From positions 973,820-1,037,819 of the forward strand of contig NZ_JMCB01000006.1 of assembly GCF_000737315.1 (NCBI RefSeq): a DNA stretch of 64,000 bases. The letters are read 5' to 3'. The stretch is from Hyalangium minutum. Its GTDB lineage: Bacteria > Myxococcota > Myxococcia > Myxococcales > Myxococcaceae. Under the pieces are notes generated by a model. The model did not search any database and was not told the origin of the DNA. It saw nothing but the letters and a program-made list of their open reading frames with translations. Shown here in pieces: positions 699 to 18,708 of this stretch (the first letter of the stretch is position 1; every line of letters begins with the position of its first letter). A program made the translations under genes and the position numbers.

Positions 699-3600
699 TC
701 AGGGCAGCGTCACCTCGTAGTACGTGCGTTTCTCTCCGGGTCGCTCACCCGGCCAGACCGCCCAGCCTTCCCAGGCGCCGCCCTGCTTGCGCAGGCACCG
801 TGTGTGGACGCGCATGCGCTTCAGGTCGCGCTGAACCTCCAGCAGGTTGAACAGGCGCGGAACGGACTCGGGACGGTGGTGGGTGGGAGCACCGAAGCTC
901 CCTGCGCCCACGACATGGAGCCGCCGTCCCGGATGCAGGTAATTCACCAGGTCGGCTCGATCCTCGTGCACGTGTCCGTGGAGACAGGCGCGGATGTCCG
1001 CCTGCAGCAACCGGCCCATGAAAGAGTCCGCCTGGATCTTCTCGTTGCCCGTGATGGGGTGGTGCCACACCGCGATTCGCAGCACCTGGGCGTCCTCCTG
1101 AAGCTCACCCCGCTTCCGTGCTCCGGCCAGCTCGAGGTGGGCGGCCTCGAGGCCACGGGAGAGGGCCCGCTCGGAGATGCTGGAGCGCTCGGTGAAGTAC
1201 TCGTCGATCTCCCAGGCCGAGTTCATGGCCAGGAACTGGATGCGCGACTCGCTGAAGAAGAAGGAGAGGCACTGCTCCTCGGACGCCAGCGGGTACGGCC
1301 GCTGCATGAGCGGGTGGTAGAAGTGCTGGGAGAAGTTCTTGAAGCGCTCCGGATACTTCGCCTCGTCCCGCAGGTAGTACCCGTCACCGTCCTCCTTGTA
1401 CGTGCCCGGCACGAGCGCGCGGGCGTCCACCTGGCGCTTCTTCTTCCGGGTGTACACCTCCGTGTCCCAGTCCAGGTCGTGATTGCCCGGCACGAGGATG
1501 CAGCGCTCGGACGTGAGACCGAACCGCTCGATGAGCGAGGACACGAACTCGCGCGCCTTCTCGAACTCCTGGGGTGAGGCCCTGTTGGTGAGGTCTCCCG
1601 AGATGACCAAATAGTCCAGCCTGTCCACCCCGAGCCCGTCGTACCGGTCCTTCAGGTCCGCATCCAGCGGCTGGAGCAGGCTCAAGGGATCCTGCGTGGC
1701 GCCCACATGGAGATCGCTCAGGTGGAGGATGCGCAGCGGGGTGTCAGCGGAGGTTTTCACGGTCTTGGCCTCGGTGATGCTCACCCTCGTCTCGGTGATG
1801 TTTTGGGAGCGCTGCTCTTGAATGTCGGTGCGCAGCGCTCGGACCTGCTGGTGCAGCTCGGGGTTGCGCTCGCGTGCCTGTTGGGCGCCCAGCGTCAGCG
1901 GTGTCCGGCGATCGCACACGGGGCATCCAATGTCCGAGTGGCCCACGTGGAGCCGCTCCCGGACGACGTCCTCGGCGAACACCCGGCCACACGTGCAGGT
2001 GATACTCAGCCGCTCCAGCAGCTCCACCCCCTGCTCGCGCAGGTGCTCCTCGATGATGTTCACGAACAGCGCGCGGGTGGTGGTGGGCGTCTCCGGATCG
2101 AAGTAGACGTCGAGCCGTGCGTGGCCACGAGCCCCCTGGCGGCCCTCACGCACTCGGCGGACGCCCGAGCTCTCCTGGCCTGCAAGGCTGAACTCGGCCC
2201 GGTCTTGCCACAGCCGCATGGGACCAAACCGGCGGCTCAGCGCGAGCGAGGTGACCAGCGAGGCGTAGATGTTGTCGATGGGGCCGGAGAAGTCGTAGTG
2301 CAGCGAGATGGCGTGCGGGAAGTCCTGGCCTGCCTCCTGCTGCGTCGGGCGGAAGAGCGAGGGGAAGATGAGCAGCCCCTCATGGCGCAAGCAGAGCCCG
2401 TGCTCGAGCAGCAGCTCGATGACGCAGTCGAGCACCAACAGCTCCTGGTCGCGAGGCAGGCGCTCCGCGGCGGCGAGGCGCGGGAACTTCATGGCTGGGG
2501 AGAGCACCTTGGCCACGTCGATGGCGGGCACTCCGTGGGGATTGTCTCGCGCGGCGAGGATGAGCGAGCCGGCGTAGCGCTCCACCTGCTCCACTTCGAG
2601 GACGAGGACGCGGGTGCCGTCGGCCAGCCGTGTGTCGGCGACACGCCCCTGACGGGCGAGCGGTCCCACGACGGAGCGGAGCACCTCCGGGTCGAAGTCG
2701 TTGCCCATCTCCCGCCGCAGCTCGGCCTCCAGCTGCGAGAAGGTGAGCACCACGTGCCGGGCTTCGCGCAGCTGCTGCAGGTGCTGGCGCATGCGCTGGA
2801 AGAGCTCCGGGCGACTGACCTGCTCGATGCTGTTCCAGTCGATGGCCTCGGCCAGCGCGGCCTTCAGCTCGGGGATGCCCTGGCCCGTCTTGGCACTGGT
2901 GGACAGATAGGAGGTGAACTGGCAGCGCTGCACCAGCCGCTCGATGGCGGGCAGATCCACCGGCGAGTCCAGGCTGTCCACCTTGCTGCCCACCAGGAGC
3001 TTGCGGATGTTCCGGGTGCCGGTGTGCGCCAGGAGGCGCTGGTTCCAGCCTTCGATTTCCTCCAGGGCCCGCTCGCCGCGTCCCGGCTCCATGACCATCA
3101 CGGCAGCGGTCGAGTCCCGCAGGAAGAGCTGATGCACGAGCTGGTACTCGTTCTGTCCTCCCATGTCCCAGAGGATGAGCTCGCGCCGCGTCTGGGCGCT
3201 GGTGGGGTCCGAGCGCTGGGGCTCCGCCGGGAGGGACCAGAACCGCATCCCGTGGGTGGACTCCATCTCTTCGTAGCGATCCTGAGCCATGCGCAGCGCG
3301 AGGCTGCTCTTTCCCGCGCGCCCTTCCCCCACGAGCACCACCTTCGCGCTGACCTCGTGGACGGTGGCGGACGGAGGCTTGGCTCTCAAGAGAGTGTCCG
3401 CGTCGATGTCCCAGAGAAAAAGGCTGCGGAAGTCTGGTCCCACGGAGGCCAAGATGTTGCGCGTGGGAGAGAAAGCCACTCCCCGAGTCAGGAATTTCTT
3501 CGAGGAGGGGGACTGGAAGCGTGCCACTATCTCCCAGGTATCGGTGCGGAACAGGAGAATGTCTCCAGTCGTCGAATGGGAGGCGAGCAGGCGGCCATCT

Positions 3601-5504
3601 GCGGAGAACGAGACGGACAGCACCGAGGCTGTGTGGCCTTCCAATCGCGTCACTGTGCGGTCTTGCTCGGCATTCAAGACATGGATGCCGCCATCTGCCG
3701 TCGCTAGTGCCAAAAGCGGTGAGTGCGGCCTCCAAGTTAGGTCGAGCACCCCGAAGCCCTGCATTGAAGATGCAAGCGTGGGCACGAACCGGTTATCCAC
3801 TTCGCTCAGCCGCCAGAGGATGAGACAGGACCCACCTTGGGCATTAATAAAGCCGCAGGCTAGGATGGGTGCATCGGGAGCCCAACCCAAGCAACTCACA
3901 GGCTCGAGCGGTGCTGGCCTTGTGAGTTCACCCAGGAACTTGCGGGTGGGCGTGTTCCAGATGCGCAGGTTTCCCTGCCCGACATCAGCGGCGAGCCAAC
4001 CTAATGAAGAGCAGGCGAGTCTGTTCCCGTCACCGGCTGGGAGTAGCTCGACCTCGATGTCGCTGGGGGTCCCTTTCGTGTGCAAGAGCCGGAGAGCACG
4101 TTTGGAGCGCGAGAGAAGGGTTTCTCCGTCCGGCGTGAAGCAGAGGTCCGTAACGACGGTCGTGTGAGCAGATGCTATCCAGGAAGGGATCTGCTCTGCG
4201 AGGGGCCAGTACGCCAGATGCCCTTGTTCGCACCCAATTGCCAGCGCATCGCCGGATGGACTCCAGGCCAGCCGGCTTACGGTTTGGCGGCCCGTCCCCA
4301 GCACTTGGCGAAGCCGGATCCCCAATGGGAGCGGAGAGGGTTCTGGCATATCCTCCCGGATCCAGGGGGCCTGCGAGGAACTGTTCCTGGGAGACGGTAC
4401 GTCTTCCGGAGGCGTGCGCGTCAACAGAGGGAACCAGAGTGGAGAATCCGTGCGGTTCTCACCAGTCAGCTCACTGGGATATTGGATCAGCGCAGCCAGG
4501 GGTATGGAAGTTGTGTCGGGCTCCCAGCTCCATTTAGCTTGGAGCGTGGTGAACAGTTCCTCCTGCGAGGAGAGGGGGCGGGAATGAAGCCGGAGCTTGG
4601 ACTTGTAGATTTCTCCCACGGCGTATCCCCAAAAAAAAGTGTCGGCTCCTGTCTCCCCGAAGAGCGACAAAGCCTGCACTGCTCGAGCCCAGTGGGAGTA
4701 TTGGGGAGGATCGGGCCAGGGTTCCCTCCACCCTGTTATGTCGAACCCACCGCACAGGTGCAGGAAAGGACGGCCTGAGGGGCCAAGTCTCTCGTGCAGG
4801 CGTGCGAGGGACTTGGATCTCAAGACTCCCGGTGGAGCATGCGTCAGCAGCAGGATCAGCTCATGCTGATGCGCCCAACGTTGGAGGTCGTGGCCAGTGG
4901 CAGCCTCCGCTTGCTCTACGTTGATTTCTCGCTGGCTCTCACTGCTGTCTGTACCAGGCTCGAAGACAGAGTTGAGACCGATAACGCCGATCTTCCATTC
5001 GCCCGCCTTCACTGTCGTAGAGAAGTCTCCGGGTAGGAAACCGTTCCGCAGCTGGATCAAAGGTGAGTGCAGGCGTTGCTGCTGGGAAGCCCACTCTGTG
5101 TAGGCTTGGAACGCGCCGCTGACGACGTGTGTGGAGGAAGGACTTACGGCATGGCTGAAGGTTTTGGGAAACTGAGAAGCAGTGGTGCGGAGGAACAGGC
5201 TCGAGGAAGCATCACGCGGCGCAAAGTCTGATTCCCCAGGGACCGCGAGTAGCAAGGGATTCGAACCCAGGCTTCGAAAGTAGTCCCACAAGGAGTTCAG
5301 CGTGGAATTCAATAGCGCGAACTCACGGGGGCTGCCCGTCTGCGTCAGATTCCCAGTGAGGAACACCACGTCCCAAGGCCCGGCTTGGTCGTGGAGCTTG
5401 CGCAGATCGGTTTCAAGGGCCTCGCGGAACTCGGGGCGCATCAGCCGCGAGCCGTGGGGCCCGAAGAGAAGATCCGACAGGTGAAGCCAGCTGAACCGCG
5501 ACAC
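699..5504 (-). CDS. Roco-type multidomain protein: degenerate metallophosphoesterase, WD40 repeats, Roc GTPase, COR, Zn ribbon, active calcineurin-like metallophosphoesterase
   Basis: N-terminus WLHLSDL..GNLT..VPGESD (degenerate MPE). WD40-like repeats (LAWSPSG, LCFTPDG, LEGHTASVLSVSFSADG). GTPase motifs GEGRAGKSS, WDMGGQ, SKVD, SAKTG. CTCG...CPVC. C-terminus LHLSDLH, GDLT, PGNHD, WHH, HGHVH. Confidence 0.85.
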   Translation of the reverse strand: MSRFSWLHLSDLLFGPHGSRLMRPEFREALETDLRKLHDQAGPWDVVFLTGNLTQTGSPREFALLNSTLNSLWDYFRSLGSNPLLLAVPGESDFAPRDASSSLFLRTTASQFPKTFSHAVSPSSTHVVSGAFQAYTEWASQQQRLHSPLIQLRNGFLPGDFSTTVKAGEWKIGVIGLNSVFEPGTDSSESQREINVEQAEAATGHDLQRWAHQHELILLLTHAPPGVLRSKSLARLHERLGPSGRPFLHLCGGFDITGWREPWPDPPQYSHWARAVQALSLFGETGADTFFWGYAVGEIYKSKLRLHSRPLSSQEELFTTLQAKWSWEPDTTSIPLAALIQYPSELTGENRTDSPLWFPLLTRTPPEDVPSPRNSSSQAPWIREDMPEPSPLPLGIRLRQVLGTGRQTVSRLAWSPSGDALAIGCEQGHLAYWPLAEQIPSWIASAHTTVVTDLCFTPDGETLLSRSKRALRLLHTKGTPSDIEVELLPAGDGNRLACSSLGWLAADVGQGNLRIWNTPTRKFLGELTRPAPLEPVSCLGWAPDAPILACGFINAQGGSCLILWRLSEVDNRFVPTLASSMQGFGVLDLTWRPHSPLLALATADGGIHVLNAEQDRTVTRLEGHTASVLSVSFSADGRLLASHSTTGDILLFRTDTWEIVARFQSPSSKKFLTRGVAFSPTRNILASVGPDFRSLFLWDIDADTLLRAKPPSATVHEVSAKVVLVGEGRAGKSSLALRMAQDRYEEMESTHGMRFWSLPAEPQRSDPTSAQTRRELILWDMGGQNEYQLVHQLFLRDSTAAVMVMEPGRGERALEEIEGWNQRLLAHTGTRNIRKLLVGSKVDSLDSPVDLPAIERLVQRCQFTSYLSTSAKTGQGIPELKAALAEAIDWNSIEQVSRPELFQRMRQHLQQLREARHVVLTFSQLEAELRREMGNDFDPEVLRSVVGPLARQGRVADTRLADGTRVLVLEVEQVERYAGSLILAARDNPHGVPAIDVAKVLSPAMKFPRLAAAERLPRDQELLVLDCVIELLLEHGLCLRHEGLLIFPSLFRPTQQEAGQDFPHAISLHYDFSGPIDNIYASLVTSLALSRRFGPMRLWQDRAEFSLAGQESSGVRRVREGRQGARGHARLDVYFDPETPTTTRALFVNIIEEHLREQGVELLERLSITCTCGRVFAEDVVRERLHVGHSDIGCPVCDRRTPLTLGAQQARERNPELHQQVRALRTDIQEQRSQNITETRVSITEAKTVKTSADTPLRILHLSDLHVGATQDPLSLLQPLDADLKDRYDGLGVDRLDYLVISGDLTNRASPQEFEKAREFVSSLIERFGLTSERCILVPGNHDLDWDTEVYTRKKKRQVDARALVPGTYKEDGDGYYLRDEAKYPERFKNFSQHFYHPLMQRPYPLASEEQCLSFFFSESRIQFLAMNSAWEIDEYFTERSSISERALSRGLEAAHLELAGARKRGELQEDAQVLRIAVWHHPITGNEKIQADSFMGRLLQADIRACLHGHVHEDRADLVNYLHPGRRLHVVGAGSFGAPTHHRPESVPRLFNLLEVQRDLKRMRVHTRCLRKQGGAWEGWAVWPGERPGEKRTYYEVTLP

Positions 5505-9454: not shown

Positions 9455-12400
9455 TCACTGCCCGCCCTGCTGCGGGTCGAGGTAGTCCCAGGCCCGGGTG
9501 TCGACCCGGGAGCCTTTGCCCAGGAACGTGAAGAAGTGGTTGGGGTTGTAGAACACGTCCTTCTCCATCTGCCGATCGAACACGAACAACTGGAAGGCCG
9601 AGTACAGCCGGTGGTTGAGGTTCAGGTTGTACAAGCTCGAGCTGTGCGGCGCGACAGCACGCGTTGGCAAGGCAAGCAACGCCTGGTTCGGATTCACCCG
9701 CTCTCCCGCGGGCGTCACGAACGAGCTCCGGAGCTTCACCATCATCCGCCGCCAGCGCGGCTGCTGGAGCACCCGCTCCAAGTCATTGTTGACGGCCTCG
9801 TAGTCGGCGTTGGTGCCCGGCATGATCTGCCGGTGGTCCACCTCGGTGTCCACGTGGGTGACGTAGAAGTCCCGGAGCGCCCTCAGCGTCCACCCCTCGC
9901 TCCGGGCGCGGAGGATAATCTGCCGCGCGCTGAGCCCGTGCAGCGCCAGCTCGTGGGACATGACGAGCGCCATGCCCCCGGGATGCCAGGTGACCATCCC
10001 GCCCAGCGCCATGTAGAGGAAGATCCGCAGGTGTTGGTTGGGATCGAACCCCGGCAGCTCCCGTGACAGCGAATACAGGGGCACCCAGTGCCCACCGGGA
10101 GTGGTGGTGTCCGAGGGATCCCGTACCTGAATGCCGCACCATCCATCAATGTCAGCCGGCTGCCGCCGGACGGTCATCACCAGCGGCACGTAGTCCGGCG
10201 CGTCCGGATCGCAGAAGGGCTCGATGGCCCGCTCCTGGAAGGCGTCCGAAGTCTCGATGATTTCGAACAGCTGCGGAATCATCGCCTTCGCCGCGGCGTA
10301 GCCCTCGATGGGCGGCCACGTGGAGGGCTCGGGCGTGGGCTCGGGCTGCGGGGTGCCCACTGCGTCCCCGCTGGAGCCCTCGGTGCCGCCCGTGGGCTGG
10401 CGGCCCTCGGCGCCGTTGCGGACTTCCACCTGGGACTCGCCGACGCTGACCTCCATGCCCGGGCTCTGGCGGACGGCGCCGATGGTCTCCATCAGGTCCA
10501 TCTGCTGCAGCGGGGACTCCTGCTTCCCCGGCTGTGAGCCGCCGCCGAGCTGCGCCTGGAGCACCCGCTCCTTCCACTCCTGGTTCTTCTCCGGGTACTT
10601 GCTGGGCGGGAAGGCGCGGTCGATCTGGTCGTTCAGGTTGGCGGCGTTGCGGCTGCTCTGGGCCGCCATGGCCAGCTGGGTGGCCATCTGGGCGTAGGAC
10701 TTCGCGGCCTCCTGGTTGGACGTCATCGCCGCCAGCGCGTTCTTCTGGTTCTGGTCCAGGCCGGTGAGGTTGGCGAACGGGCTCGCCTGCCCGAGCGCCG
10801 TCAGCAGCGCGCCCACCCCCGTCGGATCCGGAGCGGCCGGCGCGTTCTGGATGTTGACCACCGGCTGCGCCAGCGGCGAGGGCTTGGTGTCCTGCGGCGC
10901 CTGGTAGCGGCTGTCCGTGCTGACGGGGTTGATGGCGGTGGGCTCGTCGATGGGGGACTGCTCCCAGCGCCAGAACCGCGTGTCGTCGATGCGCTCGCAG
11001 GCGTTGCAGGCCCCGCGCACCGCCTCGGCGAAGACGCCCGGCGTGGGCACGCTCAGGCGGAAGGCGATCTTCTGGCCGCCCTCGCGCTCGGCCTCCGTCT
11101 GGTAGTGCTCCAGCAGGGAGGCGAAGGCCGTGGCCGCGCTGCCGCTCACCTCGGGTCGGCCCAGCTCATAGGTCGGGTCGAGGTTGAAGCCGCGCGCCAC
11201 CGGGAAGATGAGGCAGTTGCCCGCCACGCCCAAGAGCCGGTTCTCCACCAGCGACGCCAGCGAGCGCCCCAGCACTCCGCGCTGCGCGTAGACGGTGTTG
11301 AACTCGTCCTGCGCCAGGTGGATGCGGTCCAGCATCATGTACCGCCGGTGCGGGGTGATGCCGTGGCACCAGATGACGTGGTGGTAGTACTCGAGGTTCT
11401 CCCGGTTCAGGTGGTCCCGCAGCTGCTGGGCCATCCGCTGGTCCTCCTGCCACGGGTTGCGCTGCTCCTCGGGGGTGAGTGGCGTGGGCAGGAAGATCTG
11501 ATCCGCGAAGCCAATGTCGTTGCGGATGGCCCGGTCGTTCAGCAGCACGCCCGTGTGGTGGCGCGTCCGGTAGCGCAGCGTGCCCCGGTCGAGGATGGCG
11601 AAGCTGCCCGACACGCTCACGCTCGGGGACAGCAGCCGCAGGCCCACCACCTGGCTGCGCTTCAGGTCCGTGGGCGTCCCGGAGAAGCCCTGCCGGTTCA
11701 CTCCCGCCTGCAGGGCCTTGGGGTCCTGCACCCGCGTGGAGCGCACCGACACCGTGAGCGGCTTGCCCGGCGCGTAGTCCGTCAGCAGCGTGCAGTCCAG
11801 CCGCATGTCCCTCACCGTGGTGCCGTCCGCGAGGATGGCCTCGAAGCGCAGCTGCTCCACGAAGTTGCGCGCCAGGGCCGGGGCGTGCTGCTCCTGGAAG
11901 GCGCGGTCGCGCTCGGCGGCCGTCATCTTGACGAAGAGGTTGCGGACACCGTTGAGCTCCAGGCCCCGGAAGAGGTGGCTCAGGGTGGCCCAGGTGTTGA
12001 TGTCCAAGGTGCCATCCTGCGCGTCCGCCGGGCGGCTCAGCGTGAGCCGCAGCTGGAACTCACCGAAGACTTCATCGATGGACTCCTCGCAGAAGGGCAG
12101 GAACGTCACCGTGCCATTGGCCTCGCGGCGCTGCGGGAAGTCCACACCCTGGTAGTTGCGAGAGATTCGCTCGACGGCGTCGAAGCCCTTGCGCAGCTCC
12201 TGGCCCTTGGCCGTGTCCGGCCCGTAGAGCAGGTGCTCGGAGAGGCACTCGCGCCAGCGGAGCACCTTCCCGTCCGTGAAGCGGCTCATCGTCAGCGGGA
12301 CGAAGAGGCACTCCTGCACGTCCACCAGCTCCTGCTGGACGACGAAGTGCCGGAGGATTTCGAAGTACTGGATGGTGAGCGCGTGGCAGTGGTTGTGGTT

Positions 12401-14440
12401 GGCCACCACCTCCGTCTGCACGGAGAACGTCTCGCCCTGGCGTGCGCTGGTGACCACCGTGGAGCGCTGGCTGCGCACCGAGGAGGTGGCCTGCATCGTC
12501 GAGTCCCTCAGGCGGTTGTGCAGGCTGGACGTCATGTCGCGCGTGTTGTCCTGCCACGCCGACGAGGTGCCCGAGCCCCCCGAGAGGTTGAAGCCCGTGG
12601 CGATGCCCAGGGACATGTTGTCCTTGCTGCCGCTGCCCGCCAGCCCCAGGCCCGCGGACCAGCCCTTCGTCTTGGCCTTGCTGCCGCCCTTCATGGACTC
12701 GCTCAGGGTGCCGGTGAGGATCTCGTCGATGTCCCGGTCCCGCGAGAGGCTGTGGCTCAGCTGCTCGGAGACATCGGTGCTCTCGGCGCGCGAGGCCTCG
12801 TCCACGCGGTTCCAGTCGTAGATGACGAGCTGCTTCTTCTGCCCGGGCGCCAGCGGCAGCGAGTAGAGCAAGTCCCCCATGGAGTAGCCGTCCGCCTTGA
12901 ACGTCTGCTTGAAGTGGAGGACGTGGCCGTGGGCGAGCGTGACGGCCTGGTAGAGCTCGAACTCGGTGGCCTCGTCGTCCCAGCGGATGGGGTTCTTGGG
13001 CCCGAGCGTCTGCCGCAGCGTGCGGTGCAGGTGCTTGGCGTAGCCGGCGGTGTCCGCCGTGTTGCCATTCCACTCCCAGCGAGGATTCTCGTTGATGGGC
13101 ACCAGCTGGCCGCGCGGATCCGTGGTCCGCACGATGGCGTGGTGGCTGAACTCCTCCAGCGTGCGGTTGGGCACGGTGAAGTTGACGCACGAGCCGCCGA
13201 TGTCCTGCGAGTAGCTGGACTCGCCGGCGACGAGCTCCTCGGTGCCCGGCAGCCGGGGGGTGGGCTCATGGCAGGCGCAGTCCTCGTCCGCGCCACCTGG
13301 AGTGGGAGACTCCTCGGCCTCGATCACCAGCTGGGTGAAGGCAGGGAAGCGGCCATCGGCGTCGAGCAGCACGGGGCAGGGCGTGTCCGGGCGGGCGGAG
13401 ACCACGGCATAGGCGCCGGTGAACGGCTCGTTGGGGAGCACCGCCGAGAAGCTCCCGGTGCTGTGCGTGCTCACCGTGGCCAGCGGTACCTCCACGGGCT
13501 TGCCATCCGCGCCGAGGCGCTGGCCGTAGAGGATGATCTGCTGGCTCTTCATGGCCTTGCCGGTGCGCTCGACGAGCCGGCCCTTGAGGACGCGGGTGCT
13601 CGTGGGAGCGCTGGAGCCGGGGGTGAGGACGGGAGGGGTGAATGGCTCCACCTTCACCTCGAGCGAGGCGAGCTTGAGCGCCTGGGTCAGGGTGAGCTGG
13701 GGCGGCGAGACGATGCGCGCGGGCAGCCCGTTGGGGGTGCGCACCACGAGGGTGAGGGGGCTGTCCGCAAAGCGGCCCGAGGCGGTGAAGTCCACCTGGA
13801 AGGCGCCGTTGTAGCCGAGCGTGATTTCCCGGTGGATGGGCGTGGCCTTGTCATCCAGGGCGATGGTGTCGGGGCAGGAGATCTCCAGCACATAGCCTGC
13901 GATGGACTCGCTGGTGCGGGTGCTGGTGACGAAGCCTCGGAGGGGGAACAGCCGCAGCTCCTCCGCGGGCACGGGCGCGCCCGCCGCAGAGGGAGCCTTG
14001 GGCGTGTTGCTCACGGTCTGCACGGTCCCGGACGAGGTGTTCGCCTTGGAGGTCTCCGTCTGCGCCTCCTCCACGAGCACCGGGGCGCGGGTCGCGGTGG
14101 AGGCCTCGAGCTTCACCACCTTCTCGACGGCCTCGGGTGAGGGCAGCTCGAGGATGACGAGGCGCGCGGTCTCGGCGGCCTTGGTCTCCGCGAGCAGCAC
14201 CGCGTCCAATGAGGCCTTGTCCGGGAAGCTCCGCTCGGCGAGAGCGGCTCCGTCCTGGAGCACGAACAAGGTGAGGGGATAGGAGAGCTTCGAGGAGGTG
14301 ATGCCCTTGAGGAGGAAGTCGCCTTCGGGGCTCGTGAGCTCCCCGGTGAAGAGCGGCGCTTCGGGCTTGGCACCGAGGACGAGCTTGAGGGACGGGAGGA
14401 CACTGCTGTCGGAGAAGTTCAACTGCCCATAGAGTTTCAT
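9455..14440 (-). CDS. Giant (1661 aa) uncharacterised protein, possible pore-forming/toxin-like protein
   Basis: Long ORF with GC3-rich codons. N-terminal beta-sandwich-like repeats. Central block HVLHFKQTFKADGYSMGDLLYSLPLAPGQKKQ...NHNHCHALTIQYFEILRHF containing a Ser/Gly-rich alternating segment. Distinct C-terminal domain with SHELALHG. Confidence 0.75.
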   Translation of the reverse strand: MKLYGQLNFSDSSVLPSLKLVLGAKPEAPLFTGELTSPEGDFLLKGITSSKLSYPLTLFVLQDGAALAERSFPDKASLDAVLLAETKAAETARLVILELPSPEAVEKVVKLEASTATRAPVLVEEAQTETSKANTSSGTVQTVSNTPKAPSAAGAPVPAEELRLFPLRGFVTSTRTSESIAGYVLEISCPDTIALDDKATPIHREITLGYNGAFQVDFTASGRFADSPLTLVVRTPNGLPARIVSPPQLTLTQALKLASLEVKVEPFTPPVLTPGSSAPTSTRVLKGRLVERTGKAMKSQQIILYGQRLGADGKPVEVPLATVSTHSTGSFSAVLPNEPFTGAYAVVSARPDTPCPVLLDADGRFPAFTQLVIEAEESPTPGGADEDCACHEPTPRLPGTEELVAGESSYSQDIGGSCVNFTVPNRTLEEFSHHAIVRTTDPRGQLVPINENPRWEWNGNTADTAGYAKHLHRTLRQTLGPKNPIRWDDEATEFELYQAVTLAHGHVLHFKQTFKADGYSMGDLLYSLPLAPGQKKQLVIYDWNRVDEASRAESTDVSEQLSHSLSRDRDIDEILTGTLSESMKGGSKAKTKGWSAGLGLAGSGSKDNMSLGIATGFNLSGGSGTSSAWQDNTRDMTSSLHNRLRDSTMQATSSVRSQRSTVVTSARQGETFSVQTEVVANHNHCHALTIQYFEILRHFVVQQELVDVQECLFVPLTMSRFTDGKVLRWRECLSEHLLYGPDTAKGQELRKGFDAVERISRNYQGVDFPQRREANGTVTFLPFCEESIDEVFGEFQLRLTLSRPADAQDGTLDINTWATLSHLFRGLELNGVRNLFVKMTAAERDRAFQEQHAPALARNFVEQLRFEAILADGTTVRDMRLDCTLLTDYAPGKPLTVSVRSTRVQDPKALQAGVNRQGFSGTPTDLKRSQVVGLRLLSPSVSVSGSFAILDRGTLRYRTRHHTGVLLNDRAIRNDIGFADQIFLPTPLTPEEQRNPWQEDQRMAQQLRDHLNRENLEYYHHVIWCHGITPHRRYMMLDRIHLAQDEFNTVYAQRGVLGRSLASLVENRLLGVAGNCLIFPVARGFNLDPTYELGRPEVSGSAATAFASLLEHYQTEAEREGGQKIAFRLSVPTPGVFAEAVRGACNACERIDDTRFWRWEQSPIDEPTAINPVSTDSRYQAPQDTKPSPLAQPVVNIQNAPAAPDPTGVGALLTALGQASPFANLTGLDQNQKNALAAMTSNQEAAKSYAQMATQLAMAAQSSRNAANLNDQIDRAFPPSKYPEKNQEWKERVLQAQLGGGSQPGKQESPLQQMDLMETIGAVRQSPGMEVSVGESQVEVRNGAEGRQPTGGTEGSSGDAVGTPQPEPTPEPSTWPPIEGYAAAKAMIPQLFEIIETSDAFQERAIEPFCDPDAPDYVPLVMTVRRQPADIDGWCGIQVRDPSDTTTPGGHWVPLYSLSRELPGFDPNQHLRIFLYMALGGMVTWHPGGMALVMSHELALHGLSARQIILRARSEGWTLRALRDFYVTHVDTEVDHRQIMPGTNADYEAVNNDLERVLQQPRWRRMMVKLRSSFVTPAGERVNPNQALLALPTRAVAPHSSSLYNLNLNHRLYSAFQLFVFDRQMEKDVFYNPNHFFTFLGKGSRVDTRAWDYLDPQQGGQ

Positions 14441-14545: not shown

Positions 14546-15538
14546 TCAGCCCAGCCGCTCCAGCTCCCGGGTGAGCAGCGTCTCGAGGTCGCGGATGCTG
14601 CGGTAGACGATGCAGCGGTACGAGGCCACGTCGAAGCGCAGCTCCTTCACGTCGCGCACCAGCAGCACGGTGGGGCGGCCCCGGCCCCACGCATAGCCGA
14701 CCTCCAGATACACGTTCGGGTTGGCCATGGAGAGGTCGGCGATGACGACCTTGGCCGTGTCAATCCGCTCGCGGATGCGCTGGATGATGGGGCCGTCGAA
14801 GGCGGCTTGGTCCACGCGCTCGCAGAGCATGCCGGTGGACTTCACGGGGCCGAGGATGCCGTAGTGGTAGGTGTCCTCCAGCTCGGGCTCGAAGGGCATG
14901 GCCACGAAGGCGTGCGGCTTCTGCATGGAGGTGGTGCCCGCGGTGGCCATGGGCGGGGCCTGGACGAAGGCGCTCATGCGCTGCACGCGGAAGCCACCGC
15001 CTGGCAGGGGCTGGACGCCGGGGGTTCCTCCGAGCCCGCGCTCCAGTGCCTTGCGCAGCCGCAGGGCGCGCCGCGGGTCGAGCTCCACGAGCGTGACGCG
15101 CTCCAGGGTCTCGGGGCCGGTGCCGCGCTGGAAGGCCTCTACCAGTCCGCCGGCGAGCGCGAGCACGGCCTCGTCCTCATCCAACCCATAGTTGGGGCCG
15201 TGCACGGTGCTGGCCAGGCGGCGCAGGCCGGGGCGGGACTCCAGGGCCTTGAGCGCGCGGACGGCGAGCTGGCGAATCTCGTGGTACCCGAGCTGGTTGA
15301 GGCGCACGGTGCCGAGGAACAGGGCCAGCGGGGCCGTCAGTGCGCCGCGTGTCTCCACGAAGCGAGCATCTCCGACAGGGGCTTCGAGGTCTGACTTGGG
15401 GACGCCCACGGCATCGAGCCGCTGCGAGACGACGCCCGACACTCCATAGAAGCTCTGCGCGTACTTGAAGAGCGCCACGTCCGCGCGCGCCTCGGTGATG
15501 TCTCCTGCCTCCAGCACCAATTCGAGGGCCGTGCTCAT
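14546..15538 (-). CDS. Macro domain fused to a nucleoside 2-deoxyribosyltransferase/TIR-like domain
   Basis: N-terminus LEAGDITEARAD...YGVSG...HGPNYGLD (Macro-like). C-terminus AFVAMPF...IIQRIRERIDTAKVVIADLSMANPNVYLEVGYAWG (NDT/TIR-like with catalytic Glu). Confidence 0.8.
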   Translation of the reverse strand: MSTALELVLEAGDITEARADVALFKYAQSFYGVSGVVSQRLDAVGVPKSDLEAPVGDARFVETRGALTAPLALFLGTVRLNQLGYHEIRQLAVRALKALESRPGLRRLASTVHGPNYGLDEDEAVLALAGGLVEAFQRGTGPETLERVTLVELDPRRALRLRKALERGLGGTPGVQPLPGGGFRVQRMSAFVQAPPMATAGTTSMQKPHAFVAMPFEPELEDTYHYGILGPVKSTGMLCERVDQAAFDGPIIQRIRERIDTAKVVIADLSMANPNVYLEVGYAWGRGRPTVLLVRDVKELRFDVASYRCIVYRSIRDLETLLTRELERLG

Positions 15539-15722
15539 GTCGAGCCACTGTAACCGGCGGAGAGGGCGCTCCGTACAGGTTGGTGAAACCACCTCACCAG
15601 ACAGGAGCCTACTCATGTGCATTCACTCGGTGGGCAGCGCTTCGTTAGAGTAGCCCGTGACTTCTTTCGGGCGACAGGTCCGCTACGACCAGCCTCCGCG
15701 TGAAGGTCCTCGTTCCTTCGCT

Positions 15723-16212
15723 TTGCGGCCATTTCGAAAACACGGGTTCGTTTCTGCCCTGTGGATGTTGGCAGCCGTCGCAGGCTGTGAAACGCCGAGC
15801 GGGACAACAGTTCCAGGTGCGGGACCCGCATCCGCCAAGTGGGAAGGCCCCCTGATGCCGGGCCCAGGTGGCGGGCAGGTCCGAACGACCATTTACTACG
15901 GGCCGTGGCAGTGCAATCAGCGGTGGATGGATTCCTGCCAGACGCATTGCGCCTCTGAAGGCCGCAAGCTCATGGGGTGCATGTGGCTGGCCGACATCAA
16001 AACGGAATGGCAGGGCAGGTACCCGGGACCGCCTGTCGCGGCGGGCGGACGCTACGCGGGATCTTCAGCGGGGAGGTTCTCCGACGAACGAGCGCAACGT
16101 GTTGCCCGTGCCGCCCGATGTTCATGGCGTTTTCACCGACGAGTACCCCATGTGCTACGCCGGAGGCAGCAGGTGGAGCACTGTGGGTCCAGACCTGCCC
16201 TACACGGATTGA
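15723..16212 (+). pseudogene. Lipoprotein HNH-type nuclease toxin, internally deleted and frameshifted
   Basis: Lipobox LAAVAGC and Cys-rich YYGPWQC..C...C....GCMWLADIK. At 16057 the sequence switches to the +1 frame: RDLQRGGSPTNERNVLPVPPDVH...YPMCY...PYTD*, an HNH-like tail lacking the preceding HH motif. Confidence 0.65.
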
Positions 16213-16223
16213 GATCCAGTTCC

Positions 16224-16694
16224 ATGAACGCTCTGCTCGAGGAGGTCTCGCGCCACCACTTTCCGAATCCACCTGCCACGCCAGAGCAAATCGAGGCGTT
16301 TGAGCGACGGATGGGCTGGCGCCTGGATCCCGAACTCCGAGCTTTCTATCTCCACTGTGATGGAGCGGCCCTCTTCAGGCGGCGCCCGGACGCGGACTAC
16401 CGCTTCCTGTCCTTGGCCGAGATCCAGCGAGCCAGAGTCGCCATCCGCGGCAAGGATGACGATTCGCGCGGCCCGGCCTCTATGTACACGATCTGCGATC
16501 TCCAGGACGGTGACTACATCTTGGTGGACATCAGCCGTCAGCAGGGCGGCTGCTACCCCATCCTCGATGGGTGGCACGAGGCATGGCCTGATCCGGAATA
16601 TTGCAAGCAAATCGCCCACTCCTTCTCCGGGTTCCTGGAGGGCGCTCTTCGGAGCGGGGGGAATTGGTTCTGGCTGCAACAGCGCGAATCATAA
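16224..16694 (+). CDS. SMI1/KNR4 (SUKH) family immunity protein
   Basis: PPATPEQIEAFERRMGWRLDPELRAFYLHCDGA...FLSLAEI...SFSGFLEGAL. Lies immediately after the toxin remnant. Confidence 0.9.
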   Translation: MNALLEEVSRHHFPNPPATPEQIEAFERRMGWRLDPELRAFYLHCDGAALFRRRPDADYRFLSLAEIQRARVAIRGKDDDSRGPASMYTICDLQDGDYILVDISRQQGGCYPILDGWHEAWPDPEYCKQIAHSFSGFLEGALRSGGNWFWLQQRES

Positions 16695-16709: not shown

Positions 16710-17489
16710 TCAGGAGGCTTCCGCCACGTCATCCAGGCACTCGTCGGTCAGGGCCTGGATCAGCGCGATGACGGACATGCACAGCAGCGCTCCGAGCGTC
16801 AGCATCACCTGCGCCGTGAACCCCGCCAGCAGCGCGGACGTGAGCAGCAGCGGCTCGGAGTCCCGTGTCCACAGCAGGTACTGCTCGACAATCCAAGCAA
16901 TCCCGCCCAGCACCCATGCCGTCCACCACGCGGTCACCGCGGCCTTGGCGCTGCGGTGGCCTCCCAGGCTCCGGCACAGGCCGCGCACCACGAGGTACGG
17001 ATCGAACAAGTGCGCCAGCGGAATGAACCACCACGCCACGGCCCACCCCGGCGTCGTCCCCGGATCCAGGCCGAGCACCCTCGCCGTCCGCACCGCCAGG
17101 TGCAGCCACCGCAGGAAGAACAGCGCTGACAGCCCCAGCACCGCGAGCAGCGGCACGCGCAGCAACTCCCAGAGCCGCTGGTAGGTGGCCGCCGCGTCTC
17201 GGGGCACCCACCCTCCTTGGAGCCGGTTGATCAACCAGCCGTCGAGCATTGCGCCGAGCAACAACCCGATCGCTGCCAGCCCCAGCGCGCCCATCGCCAG
17301 GCTCCCCCGGGTCCGCAGCGAGGGCAGCTCCCGGAGCTGCCGGTACTCGCAAGCAGCGCAGCGGTCGCCCCACGTCTCACAGCGGGCACAGATGAAGCGG
17401 CCACACCGCGAGCACGTCCCCACCGGCTTGAAGGTGGGGTGCTCGGGACAGACCACATCGCGCGCCAGGGCGGCAGAGGCAGAGGTCAT
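16710..17489 (-). CDS. DUF4328-like membrane protein with N-terminal Zn finger
   Basis: CPEH..CSRCGRFICARC..C..C, followed by WLH..V...PGWAVAWWFIPLAHLFDPY and WWTAW. Confidence 0.8.
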   Translation of the reverse strand: MTSASAALARDVVCPEHPTFKPVGTCSRCGRFICARCETWGDRCAACEYRQLRELPSLRTRGSLAMGALGLAAIGLLLGAMLDGWLINRLQGGWVPRDAAATYQRLWELLRVPLLAVLGLSALFFLRWLHLAVRTARVLGLDPGTTPGWAVAWWFIPLAHLFDPYLVVRGLCRSLGGHRSAKAAVTAWWTAWVLGGIAWIVEQYLLWTRDSEPLLLTSALLAGFTAQVMLTLGALLCMSVIALIQALTDECLDDVAEAS

Positions 17490-17586
17490 CGGGAGCGATA
17501 CACCCCTCAAGGCCCTCAGGTTCCAGGGCCCGCGAAGTATCTCCCAACCTCCTTGGAAGATACACGGTCCCGCTTCTGACGCTTCC

Positions 17587-18708
17587 TCAGGTCCGGGCCG
17601 CGGCGGAGACGGTGAAAGCGCCCACGGGGGTGGCAGCTCCGTTGATGAGCGCCTCGACGCGGTGCGAGCCCGGGTAGTGCTGGCGCGTGGTGAGAGTCTC
17701 GAGAGACACAGTCTTCTCCAGCGTGGTGGAGGCACCGGGCGCCAGTTCCACCTTGCGCACCTTGAAGACCTTGGGGCGGGAAGCCCCGTTGGCCTTGATG
17801 AAGTGCACGGCCAAGTCCACCACGGCCTTCTGGCGCTCCGAGGAGCGGTTCTCCACGTGGAGTTGCACCTGCACGGACTGGCCCAGGCGCACGCGGCGCG
17901 GGTGGAAGGTGGCGGTGACCTCGAGCGCGGCGGGGCCCTCGAAGCCCAGCACGGCCAGGGCTCCGCGGTCGCCGCGCTTCACGGCCGAGCGCAGGGCATG
18001 ACGGACGATCCACTGGCGCTCGGGAGAGGCGCCTCGGCTCCAGCGCTCGCAGGTGGCCACGAGCAGCTCCGGGTGGTCCTTGCCGATGTCGTTGAGGTTG
18101 TTGGCCACCGAGCGGCGCACGTAGAGCTCGGGGTCGTCCTTGAGCAGCTCGAGCAGCTCGAGCACCGGCCGAGGATCCTCCTGGAACGCGCGCAGCCGGG
18201 ACGCCCAGGGCAGGCGCGGCCGGGTGCCCTCGGAGACGAGGCGCCGCACGTGCACGTTCGCATCCGCCGCCCACTGGCGCAGCCGCGCGAGCGTCTCCTT
18301 CGGGTAGCGCTCGAGGTAGGGGCGGATGCAGAACTCGGCGGTGAAGCGCTGGGTGAGCGCTCGCTGCAGGTGCATGGCGGGCTCGAAGTGCTCCAGCCCG
18401 TGCTCGGCCACATAGAGGGAGTGGGGCAGGTAGAGGAACACGGACATGCCATGGCTTTCGGTGCCCTCCAGCGGCGGCCCGAGCGAGCCCTGGAGGATGC
18501 GCGCCGTGTGCTCGAAGTCCTGGGGCAGCGCACGGTGCATGGCGCGCATGATGTGGCGCGCGCGGTCCATCAGCTCGAGGGCCTCCAGCCCTTCGGAGGC
18601 CTCGGCGACGAAGCGGCGCTCGGGGAAGGAGGGGTGGGCGGTGCGCAGCATGGCGGCAATGCGCCGCACCGCCTCCTCGTTGAAGAACGTCTTGAGGGAT
18701 TCGGCCAT
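17587..18708 (-). CDS. DNA alkylation repair (AlkD/HEAT-like) protein
   Basis: LELMDR...LTQRFTAEFCIRPYL...VRRLVSEGTRPRLPWA...LKDDPELYVRRSVANNLNDI. Confidence 0.85.
   Translation of the reverse strand: MAESLKTFFNEEAVRRIAAMLRTAHPSFPERRFVAEASEGLEALELMDRARHIMRAMHRALPQDFEHTARILQGSLGPPLEGTESHGMSVFLYLPHSLYVAEHGLEHFEPAMHLQRALTQRFTAEFCIRPYLERYPKETLARLRQWAADANVHVRRLVSEGTRPRLPWASRLRAFQEDPRPVLELLELLKDDPELYVRRSVANNLNDIGKDHPELLVATCERWSRGASPERQWIVRHALRSAVKRGDRGALAVLGFEGPAALEVTATFHPRRVRLGQSVQVQLHVENRSSERQKAVVDLAVHFIKANGASRPKVFKVRKVELAPGASTTLEKTVSLETLTTRQHYPGSHRVEALINGAATPVGAFTVSAAART

Follow-up and report, generated by a model that had tools for sequence, protein, structure and literature searches.

A macro-like domain joined to an NDT/TIR-like domain in Hyalangium minutum: a candidate stand-alone sensor-effector of NAD+/ADP-ribose-centred conflict

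In type II Thoeris, ThsA combines a Macro sensor with a membrane effector and acts together with the TIR protein ThsB; the system is centred on NAD and ADP-ribose (ADPr), and the ThsB TIRs have NDT-like active sites (PMC11204291). In the TIR effectors of CBASS and Pycsar (PADLOC model PDLC00733; CAP12/PCTIR), and in TIR NADases such as SARM1 and the SPARTA TIR-APAZ, a sensor and a TIR-class glycosidase share one chain. The gene described here occupies positions 14546..15538, on the minus strand, of a 64,000-nucleotide stretch (the window) of the myxobacterium Hyalangium minutum (contig NZ_JMCB01000006.1), and encodes a macro-like domain followed by an NDT/TIR-like domain. By analogy, the closest working models for its product would be a Macro-type ThsA and a TIR-type CBASS effector, with a sensor and an NAD-directed output in the same chain. 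As in ThsA, the macro fold is N-terminal to the output domain, and relatives of the protein are fused to TIR; unlike in ThsA, the output is a soluble NDT/TIR-like domain and not a transmembrane one, and the gene forms a solo syntenic locus. The likeness to the CBASS and SPARTA effectors extends to the PDLC00733 and Foldseek matches and to the ability of a canonical TIR to replace or supplement the C-domain in relatives, whereas the sensor is macro-like rather than SAVED, STING or APAZ and no cyclase or Argonaute partner is found in the window. The protein is read here as a stand-alone sensor-effector of an NAD+/ADP-ribose-centred conflict and cell-death network, a reading to which a probability of about one half is given.

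The gene is a complete coding sequence of 330 amino acids plus stop, made up of the macro-like domain, a linker and the NDT/TIR-like domain, and the coordinates below refer to its minus strand. The limits given by an initial annotation, made from the DNA letters and a list of open reading frames (ORFs), are right, as coding bias and homologue starts agree on them: GC content at third codon positions (GC3) is 0.89, with the codon bias of the host (genome ~68% GC), and the homologues are full-length (E down to 1e-208), 330-331 amino acids long, and start at the Met at 15538. A longer ORF extends to 15622; this start was rejected because the homologues begin at the 15538 Met and the extra 28 amino acids are not conserved. 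The only other long annotation, in H. rubrum (P0007), has an N-terminal extension unrelated to the 28-residue one. Identity to full-length homologues in Hyalangium, Myxococcus, Pyxidicoccus, Corallococcus, Archangium and Vitiosangium ranges from 56 to 92%, and the orthologue of M. xanthus DK1622 is MXAN_3123 (P0067). Promoter and terminator scans around the gene gave nothing, and NCBIfam had no match for the protein or its neighbours. No paper was found on MXAN_3123, on the two-domain family or on a macro/NDT fusion, in a literature search that did not cover Burroughs et al. 2015.

Residues 207-330 (14549..14920) were assigned, by AlphaFold2, Foldseek and profiles, to a TIR-related Rossmannoid domain of the NDT/DNPH1/MilB type (DrHyd). 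A separate AlphaFold2 model of residues 200-330, with a mean predicted local distance difference test (pLDDT) of 87.8, presents the Rossmannoid NDT fold, so that the NDT/TIR-like half named in the initial annotation is upheld at the level of the model. In Foldseek, NDT (8qc0, E 5e-6), the CMP N-glycosidase BcmB (4jen) and DNPH1 came on top, and the TIR domains of SARM1, SPARTA and RPS4 ranked below NDT, at E 2e-4 or weaker. Sequence-level support is confined to this half, with none for the N-half. The Pfam family Nuc_deoxyrib_tr (PF05014) scored 25.7 bits on the protein, under its cut-off of 28.8, which is passed by the relatives P0135 (29.5) and P0239 (31.2); many homologues have a precomputed PF05014 match. 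The PADLOC model for the CBASS 'Effector TIR' (PDLC00733) matched the C-half at 3e-13, and Pfam TIR, TIR_2, ThsB_TIR and CAP12 gave no match in the protein. When the profile of the C-half family was compared with the PDB, MilB was retrieved at E 0.005, together with Rcl/DNPH1 and BlsM; the single-sequence search of the PDB gave a weak MilB match only. At the level of fold and catalytic residues, the C-domain belongs to the NDT/DrHyd superfamily.

The motif N273-P-N-V-Y-L-E-V-G-Y-A283 (14690..14722), which can be read directly from the sequence as had been reported, is invariant in the family alignments from Myxococcota to Chloroflexota, Acidobacteriota and one Methanosarcina metagenome-assembled genome (MAG). 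Its Glu279 (14702..14704), which takes the place of the catalytic Glu in the E-x-G-x-A helix that follows strand 4 in this class, is the predicted catalytic residue, acting as nucleophile or oxocarbenium stabiliser: its column in the alignments holds the catalytic Glu of MilB and the 'YELG' Glu of Rcl/DNPH1, and the Glu-to-Ala mutant of MilB (PDB 4ohb) differs from the wild type exactly at this column. The catalytic-type Glu anticipated for this half is thus present, and it is near-invariant in the two-domain family (54 of 56 clusters). The protein therefore resembles NDT, DNPH1 (Rcl) and the MilB-BcmB-BlsM group (DrHyd, PF05014) in its fold and in the Glu at the aligned column. It departs from them in the Phe found by motif alignment at a Tyr position, in the family-specific invariant C239-E240-R241 and F302-D303, in its sub-cut-off Pfam score, in the fusion to a macro-like domain, and in having relatives within immune-type architectures instead of antibiotic or nucleotide-salvage operons. 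The Phe is F211, placed at the NDT/DNPH1 Tyr by the alignment of A-F-V-A-M-P-F with x-Y-F-A-G-P. That Tyr, an active-site residue after strand 1 that pairs with the Glu, enforces 2'-deoxy specificity in NDT/DNPH1, and NADase TIRs have Phe or Ala (PMC11204291); the substitution would fit a ribonucleotide or NAD+ as the substrate.

One alternative, which seems improbable, is that the protein makes a signal: the NDT-like domain would carry out base exchange or cyclisation on NAD+, the macro-like domain would hold the ADP-ribose moiety or the product, and the messenger would be read by another protein. NDT-class enzymes are transferases, the NDT-like ThsB TIRs, whose partners are Macro sensors, form ADPR conjugates through base exchange (PMC11204291), and DrHyd domains are counted among the second-messenger generators of conflict systems (PMC7159879; PMC9503650). 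However, no lineage has a conserved adjacent partner gene that could read such a signal, the EAD1, EAD7 and bDLD domains found in relatives recruit effectors rather than signalling components (PMC7159879), and the Tyr position of NDT appears to be Phe.

Residues 1-190 (14969..15538) form a divergent macrodomain-fold domain, assigned by AlphaFold2 and Foldseek with a weak profile alignment to TTHA0132. In the full-length AlphaFold2 model, built on 46 homologues (pLDDT 85.7), this half has the three-layer alpha/beta/alpha macro fold, in keeping with the Macro-like half suggested from the letters. Foldseek against the PDB retrieved the macrodomains of Af1521, YmdB, TTHA0132, PARP9/14 and macroH2A, with TM-scores on the target of 0.65-0.72, probability 1.0, E 1e-5 to 1e-8 and sequence identity of 11-23%. 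The model also matched macrodomains in a viral structure library, where the same two kinds of single-domain matches were obtained for the two halves and no two-domain protein. The best structural matches are macrodomains of the MacroD type (Af1521, E. coli YmdB, T. thermophilus TTHA0132), with which the domain shares a GDIT-like start and the Gly positions of loop 2; it differs from them in having Lys25 for Asn, a short GGG loop, an added acidic D-E-x-E cluster and His113. The alignment with TTHA0132 was judged sensible despite its E value of 0.46. In it, G12-D13-I14-T15 (15494..15505), also read directly from the letters, faces the GDIT of TTHA0132; K25-Y-A-Q faces NAAN; and the loops pair Y-G-A-D with G-A-G and H-G-x-G-Y-G-L-D-E-x-E with G-T-G-V-G-G-L-P-V-E. 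Asp13, present in 52 of the 56 two-domain clusters, sits at the adenine-contacting Asp position of macrodomains, and Lys25 (15464..15466), at the first Asn of NAAN, is invariant in three family alignments (A1, A4 and A5) and kept in all architectures. The signature H113-G-P-N-Y-G-L-D-E-D-E123 (15170..15202) lies at macrodomain loop 2, the phosphate-binding G-x-x-G loop, and is followed by the acidic cluster; across phyla, H113, G114, G118, L119, D120, E121 and E123 are invariant. The K-x6-G-[AV]-D spacing of the family resembles the MacroD signature N-x6-GG[VLI]-D and is used as a lead only. Between the two domains, residues 191-206 (14921..14968) constitute a linker of variable length, indel-rich in alignment A4 and modelled with low confidence as disordered (pLDDT <50 at residues 193-205).

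Most was learned from the company that the macro-like domain keeps. A search with the N-half in 1.84 billion representative proteins gave 694 clusters, of which 474 reached E 1e-10 or better, and the best 148 were classified by local hidden Markov models (HMMs) and Pfam. The N+C form of the target accounts for 63 of these 148, and about 33 have TIR_2+N+C or, in several truncated cases, TIR+N. The remaining forms are CHAT+N+C, with the caspase-like CHAT (2 clusters), EAD7 inserted in the C-domain (3), EAD1+N with or without C (3), bDLD1+N+C (1), P0204, where a canonical TIR_2 comes after the N-domain and the NDT-like domain is missing (1), and short fragments (about 28). Among the best 148 clusters the macro-like domain is essentially never found without a TIR-class output domain, and TIR, CHAT, EAD1, EAD7 or bacterial Death-like domains are present on ~40% of the complete clusters examined. 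Domains of these kinds are the hallmark of NTP-dependent conflict and apoptosis-like systems in multicellular bacteria, where EAD1, EAD7 and death-like domains recruit effectors (Kaur et al. 2020, PMC7159879). The protein is linked to the EAD/Death-like conflict systems of multicellular bacteria (PMC7159879) by its relatives, which carry EAD1, EAD7, bDLD1, CHAT and TIR, and by its host, a multicellular myxobacterium, but it starts directly with the macro-like domain, with no adaptor and no adjacent core NTPase. The idea that a sensor and a base-cleaving effector are united in one chain is in this way partly borne out, through the fusions, the TIR swap of P0204 and the PDLC00733 match. Two relatives point to further undescribed partners of the module: P0242 (388 amino acids), in which the macro-like domain precedes a helical region of ~200 amino acids with no Pfam match and there is no NDT-like domain, and P0247 (413 amino acids), with an unassigned N-terminal extension of ~90 amino acids before the module.

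The conserved residues behave differently in the two domains when the architecture changes. In the N-domain, D20, K25, G32, Y85, H113, G114, G118, D120, E121, E123 and R157 are kept in every architecture. In the C-domain, the active-site set N273, N275, Y277, E279, F302 and D303 is near-invariant in the two-domain forms. Of 32 TIR-fused clusters, however, 19 have lost E279, and so have all 3 EAD7 clusters. The largest TIR-fused clade, like all EAD7 forms, has lost the C-domain active-site set; in this clade the losses include N275, E279 and D303, E279 being replaced by Gln in 11 clusters and by Leu, His, Ser, Arg, Gly or Tyr in others. The TIR Glu is present in the TIR-fused clade that is devoid of E279. 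A sensor that stays the same while its TIR-type catalytic outputs are exchanged would fit such a pattern. In a rough neighbour-joining tree, crude as it is, the TIR-fused forms are interleaved with the two-domain forms, the closest non-myxobacterial relative of the target being the TIR-fused P0127. The correlated loss of E279, together with P0204, suggests that the catalytic role of the C-domain can pass to TIR, and the possibility of such a takeover is in turn suggestive of cleavage of the N-glycosidic bond of NAD+ in the two-domain forms that bear the Glu. That Glu-less C-domains are retained in TIR-fused and EAD7 forms implies a role of the domain beyond catalysis. D222, C239, E240, G281, Y282 and Y312 are conserved throughout all architectures, and inactive DrHyd and SLOG sensor versions are known (PMC9503650). 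Hence, the protein might be thought a non-catalytic nucleotide-binding or scaffold protein whose domains only bind ligands or partners, in the manner of inactive TIR, DrHyd or SLOG sensors; but the near invariance of the whole active-site set in the two-domain forms, the target among them, argues for catalysis and makes such a protein very improbable.

In the proposed sensor-effector, the C-domain would be a TIR-related N-glycosidase in which E279 serves to cleave a ribonucleotide between base and ribose; the substrate would most likely be NAD+, the domain being then a TIR-equivalent NADase. The N-domain would bind a phosphoribosyl or ADP-ribose-type small molecule, and would either gate the glycosidase or hand the substrate over to it. 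As the protein has neither adaptor nor TIR domain, it would have to be activated by a diffusible ligand that the cell produces at another place, and physiologically it would act as a conflict or cell-death effector. The analysis itself shows the two folds, the conservation of the Glu, an obligate domain pairing, the recurrent immune-type fusions and the correlated loss; the substrate, the gating by a ligand and the physiological role are inferred. In a more detailed version, which is doubtful, the family would be an undescribed, widespread, single-protein NAD+-cleaving switch: an ADP-ribose-derived messenger from unlinked TIR proteins, read by a new macrodomain subtype, would unleash a TIR-equivalent glycosidase, and the switch would have been domesticated in myxobacteria as a vertically inherited core gene, for instance in phage-triggered or developmental programmed cell death.

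A number of observations weigh against the sensor-effector proposal, some from the N-domain itself and others from inheritance and genomic context. The whole protein matched no Macro family of Pfam at E up to 1; nor did 26 N-halves of the family match any at E up to 10, ThsA_Macro included, the only clan-related match being Peptidase_M17_N (E 0.017, 3 of 26). The TTHA0132 profile match lacks significance, other residues stand in for the NAAN Asn and the GGG loop, and D34, kept in most of the family, is Ser in the target (Ser or Ala in the target and its closest relatives). In place of NAAN and GGG the family has its own invariant set (K25, Y85, H113, D120, E121, E123 and R157). Hence the 'G-rich loops' of the initial annotation are found in part: the loop-2 glycines G114 and G118 are kept, like D13 of GDIT, while loop 1 reads Y-G-[AV]-D in the family, with Ser for this Asp in the target, the GGG loop being shortened and replaced. 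The claim of ADP-ribose sensing did not gain from these searches, in which no Macro-clan model was matched and the family-specific set stood where the canonical motifs were expected. Since no curated Macro match was obtained and the canonical motifs are altered, ADP-ribose binding can only be inferred. Pfam (2025 copy), NCBIfam and PADLOC have no model for the N-domain, which is an undescribed macrodomain subtype.

Several features of the family and its inheritance weigh in the same way. The exchange of one catalytic Glu for the other is not universal, since several TIR-fused groups keep both glutamates. For an immune gene, the degree of sequence conservation is unusually high. No two-domain copy occurs in the phage or plasmid collections, and an HMM made from 36 TIR domains found no TIR ORF in the 64-kb window, which has no defence gene. 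The inheritance of the target in the Myxococcaceae is ordinary vertical inheritance. Myxococcus, Corallococcus, Pyxidicoccus and Citreicoccus share one chromosomal neighbourhood, in which the peptidases S9 and S13 and a D-serine-dehydratase-like gene are found, and the divergence of the target from the M. xanthus copy (average identity 73%) is like that of most neighbours (67-81%), the GerE-family regulator of the neighbourhood being more conserved (93.5%). A different neighbourhood is common to Archangium and Vitiosangium, and those of H. rubrum and the H. minutum window differ again. PADLOC on 54 flanking genes from distant taxa gave only two generic 'mad2' matches and one methyltransferase, with no defence enrichment; by Pfam these genes are metabolic or housekeeping, and no neighbour recurs across phyla.

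The defence-island context that would accompany an anti-phage role, as the initial annotation envisaged, was accordingly seen neither in the window nor around relatives from many phyla, and the Myxococcaceae copy behaves like an ordinary chromosomal gene. Homologues in housekeeping contexts, which that annotation had regarded as evidence against defence, do occur as regards gene context. The main rival is a bifunctional housekeeping enzyme that would serve metabolite repair or the catabolism of nucleotides, NAD or ADP-ribose, with no conflict role, and in which the macro-like domain would be a hydrolase acting through its invariant Lys, His, Asp and Glu and the NDT-like domain would free the base from the same or the next intermediate. 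We regard it as rather unlikely, the signal-making and non-catalytic alternatives being less likely still. It would account for a chromosomal gene that stands alone, keeps its synteny across genera and diverges like its neighbours, for metabolic and housekeeping neighbours across phyla and absence from phages and plasmids, and for 40-50% identity between phyla with invariant polar residues in both domains; besides, the closest solved relatives of the C-half, MilB, BcmB, DNPH1 and NDT, are metabolic N-glycosidases. It would not account for the fusions to TIR, CHAT, EAD1, EAD7 and bDLD1, which are counted as foreign to housekeeping enzymes, for the displacement of the C-domain by TIR in P0204 and the loss of the catalytic Glu in many TIR-fused forms, or for the PADLOC CBASS effector match of the C-half and the patchy distribution. 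The last was determined in a scan of one genome per species, over ~185,000 species, in which relatives were found in at least 534 species. The best 80 of them are full-length two-domain genes, with identities of 50-80% in Myxococcota and 40-50% in other phyla (Chloroflexota, Acidobacteriota, Leptospirales, Binatia, Gallionellales, Verrucomicrobiota, Gemmatimonadota and one Methanosarcina MAG).

Assignment of the gene to a described system was also considered. It is not a Thoeris member, having no adjacent thsB, no TIR within 64 kb, no ThsA_Macro match and unrelated neighbours. Nor does it belong to CBASS, as PADLOC found no CD-NTase among the 39 genes of the window, where only generic AAA, radical-SAM and phosphoesterase matches were obtained and no cyclase or CBASS core. 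Membership of a curated Macro family was discarded because no sequence model of the Macro clan was matched. An operon with the downstream 1661-residue ORF or with the upstream SUKH gene was likewise rejected, neither being beside any homologue in 84 loci and the contexts varying by genus. No second copy of either domain was found in the 64-kb window, and no core NTPase lies within 8-10 kb of the EAD7- and TIR-fused relatives whose contexts were checked, which are also solo genes among housekeeping neighbours.

What is new in this family is the use of the sensor plus TIR-class effector plan on an undescribed macrodomain subtype, in a protein that is widespread and unusually stably inherited in myxobacteria. 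If the sensor-effector proposal is true, a new macrodomain subtype with its own ligand would join the short list of bacterial immune sensors (SLOG, Macro, SAVED, STING and CARF), an NDT-class domain could stand in for TIR as an NADase-type output, and MXAN_3123 would be a genetically tractable entry to the wiring of NAD/ADPr signalling in a multicellular bacterium. The natural 'experiments' in the family, with TIR added, TIR replacing the C-domain, Glu279 lost in the presence of TIR, and EAD or death-like adaptors, lend themselves to sharp testable predictions. If the enzyme is instead a housekeeping one, it would reveal a so far unknown step in the catabolism of ADP-ribose or nucleotides, with conservation that reaches from Myxococcota to Chloroflexota.

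Domains of the C-half type also occur alone, in small proteins located beside integrases, in prophage-like regions, on plasmids and in Staphylococcus phages, all of which match PDLC00733. In Staphylococcus phage P630 (L087, 2923-3573), gene P630_47 encodes a 216-residue protein with such a domain (PDLC00733, 5e-12). Placed like a moron or defence gene, it is read in the direction opposite to the replication module around it, and genes of this type are found in 15 other Staphylococcus and 7 Streptococcus phage records; they are probably the 'distinct TIR version of small Firmicute phages' of PMC9503650. In a prophage-like stretch of a Bacillus albus plasmid (L086, 4659-5438), a 259-residue protein has a C-half-like domain preceded by an N-terminal region weakly similar to SLATT/2TM effectors (Pfam 0.016; PADLOC 0.009).

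Some database records that carry relatives of the gene deserve comment. The record BNCN01000010.1 (L014), named 'Comamonas sp. KCTC 72670', holds the gene at 75% identity with full Myxococcus-type synteny, and is very likely a misnamed myxobacterial genome. The labels of three 'uncultured Enterobacterales' MAGs (L056, L057 and L061) are doubtful on high-GC contigs carrying the gene; the contigs L056 and L057 come from a single MAG and are duplicates. In H. rubrum, an RVT_1 reverse-transcriptase gene (L002, 4263-5681), possibly of a retron, is situated ~4 kb upstream of the orthologue and is absent from the neighbourhood in the window.

Among the other genes of the window, the one at 699-5504 (minus strand) encodes a 1601-residue protein with WD40 repeats, a Ras/Roc-type GTPase (residues 721-887) and a C-terminal calcineurin-like phosphoesterase, which matches the PADLOC 'Effector endonuclease' model PDLC00736 (8e-15) and PDC-S60. 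This giant, ~9 kb away from the target, has the look of a conflict or signalling protein centred on its GTPase, with no demonstrated link to the target. The 1661-residue ORF (9455-14440, minus strand), in which coding bias is strong (GC3 0.95), lies directly downstream of the target on the same strand, after a gap of 105 bp; it has no relative in Pfam, NCBIfam, PADLOC or the PDB and no HExxH motif. Upstream and divergently oriented, the ORF at 15657-16694 (plus strand) contains a SUKH-1/SMI1_KNR4 immunity-type domain (7e-19); its 5' two-thirds are devoid of the host codon bias, and the real gene is probably at ~16227-16694, with ~155 amino acids. It is followed by a DUF4328 membrane protein with an N-terminal zinc-ribbon-like stretch (16710-17735, minus strand) and by a HEAT/DNA-alkylation-repair-like gene (17587-18708, minus strand), whose listed start is overlapped over ~150 bp by the DUF4328 gene; the ORF list probably gives a wrong start codon for one of these two genes.

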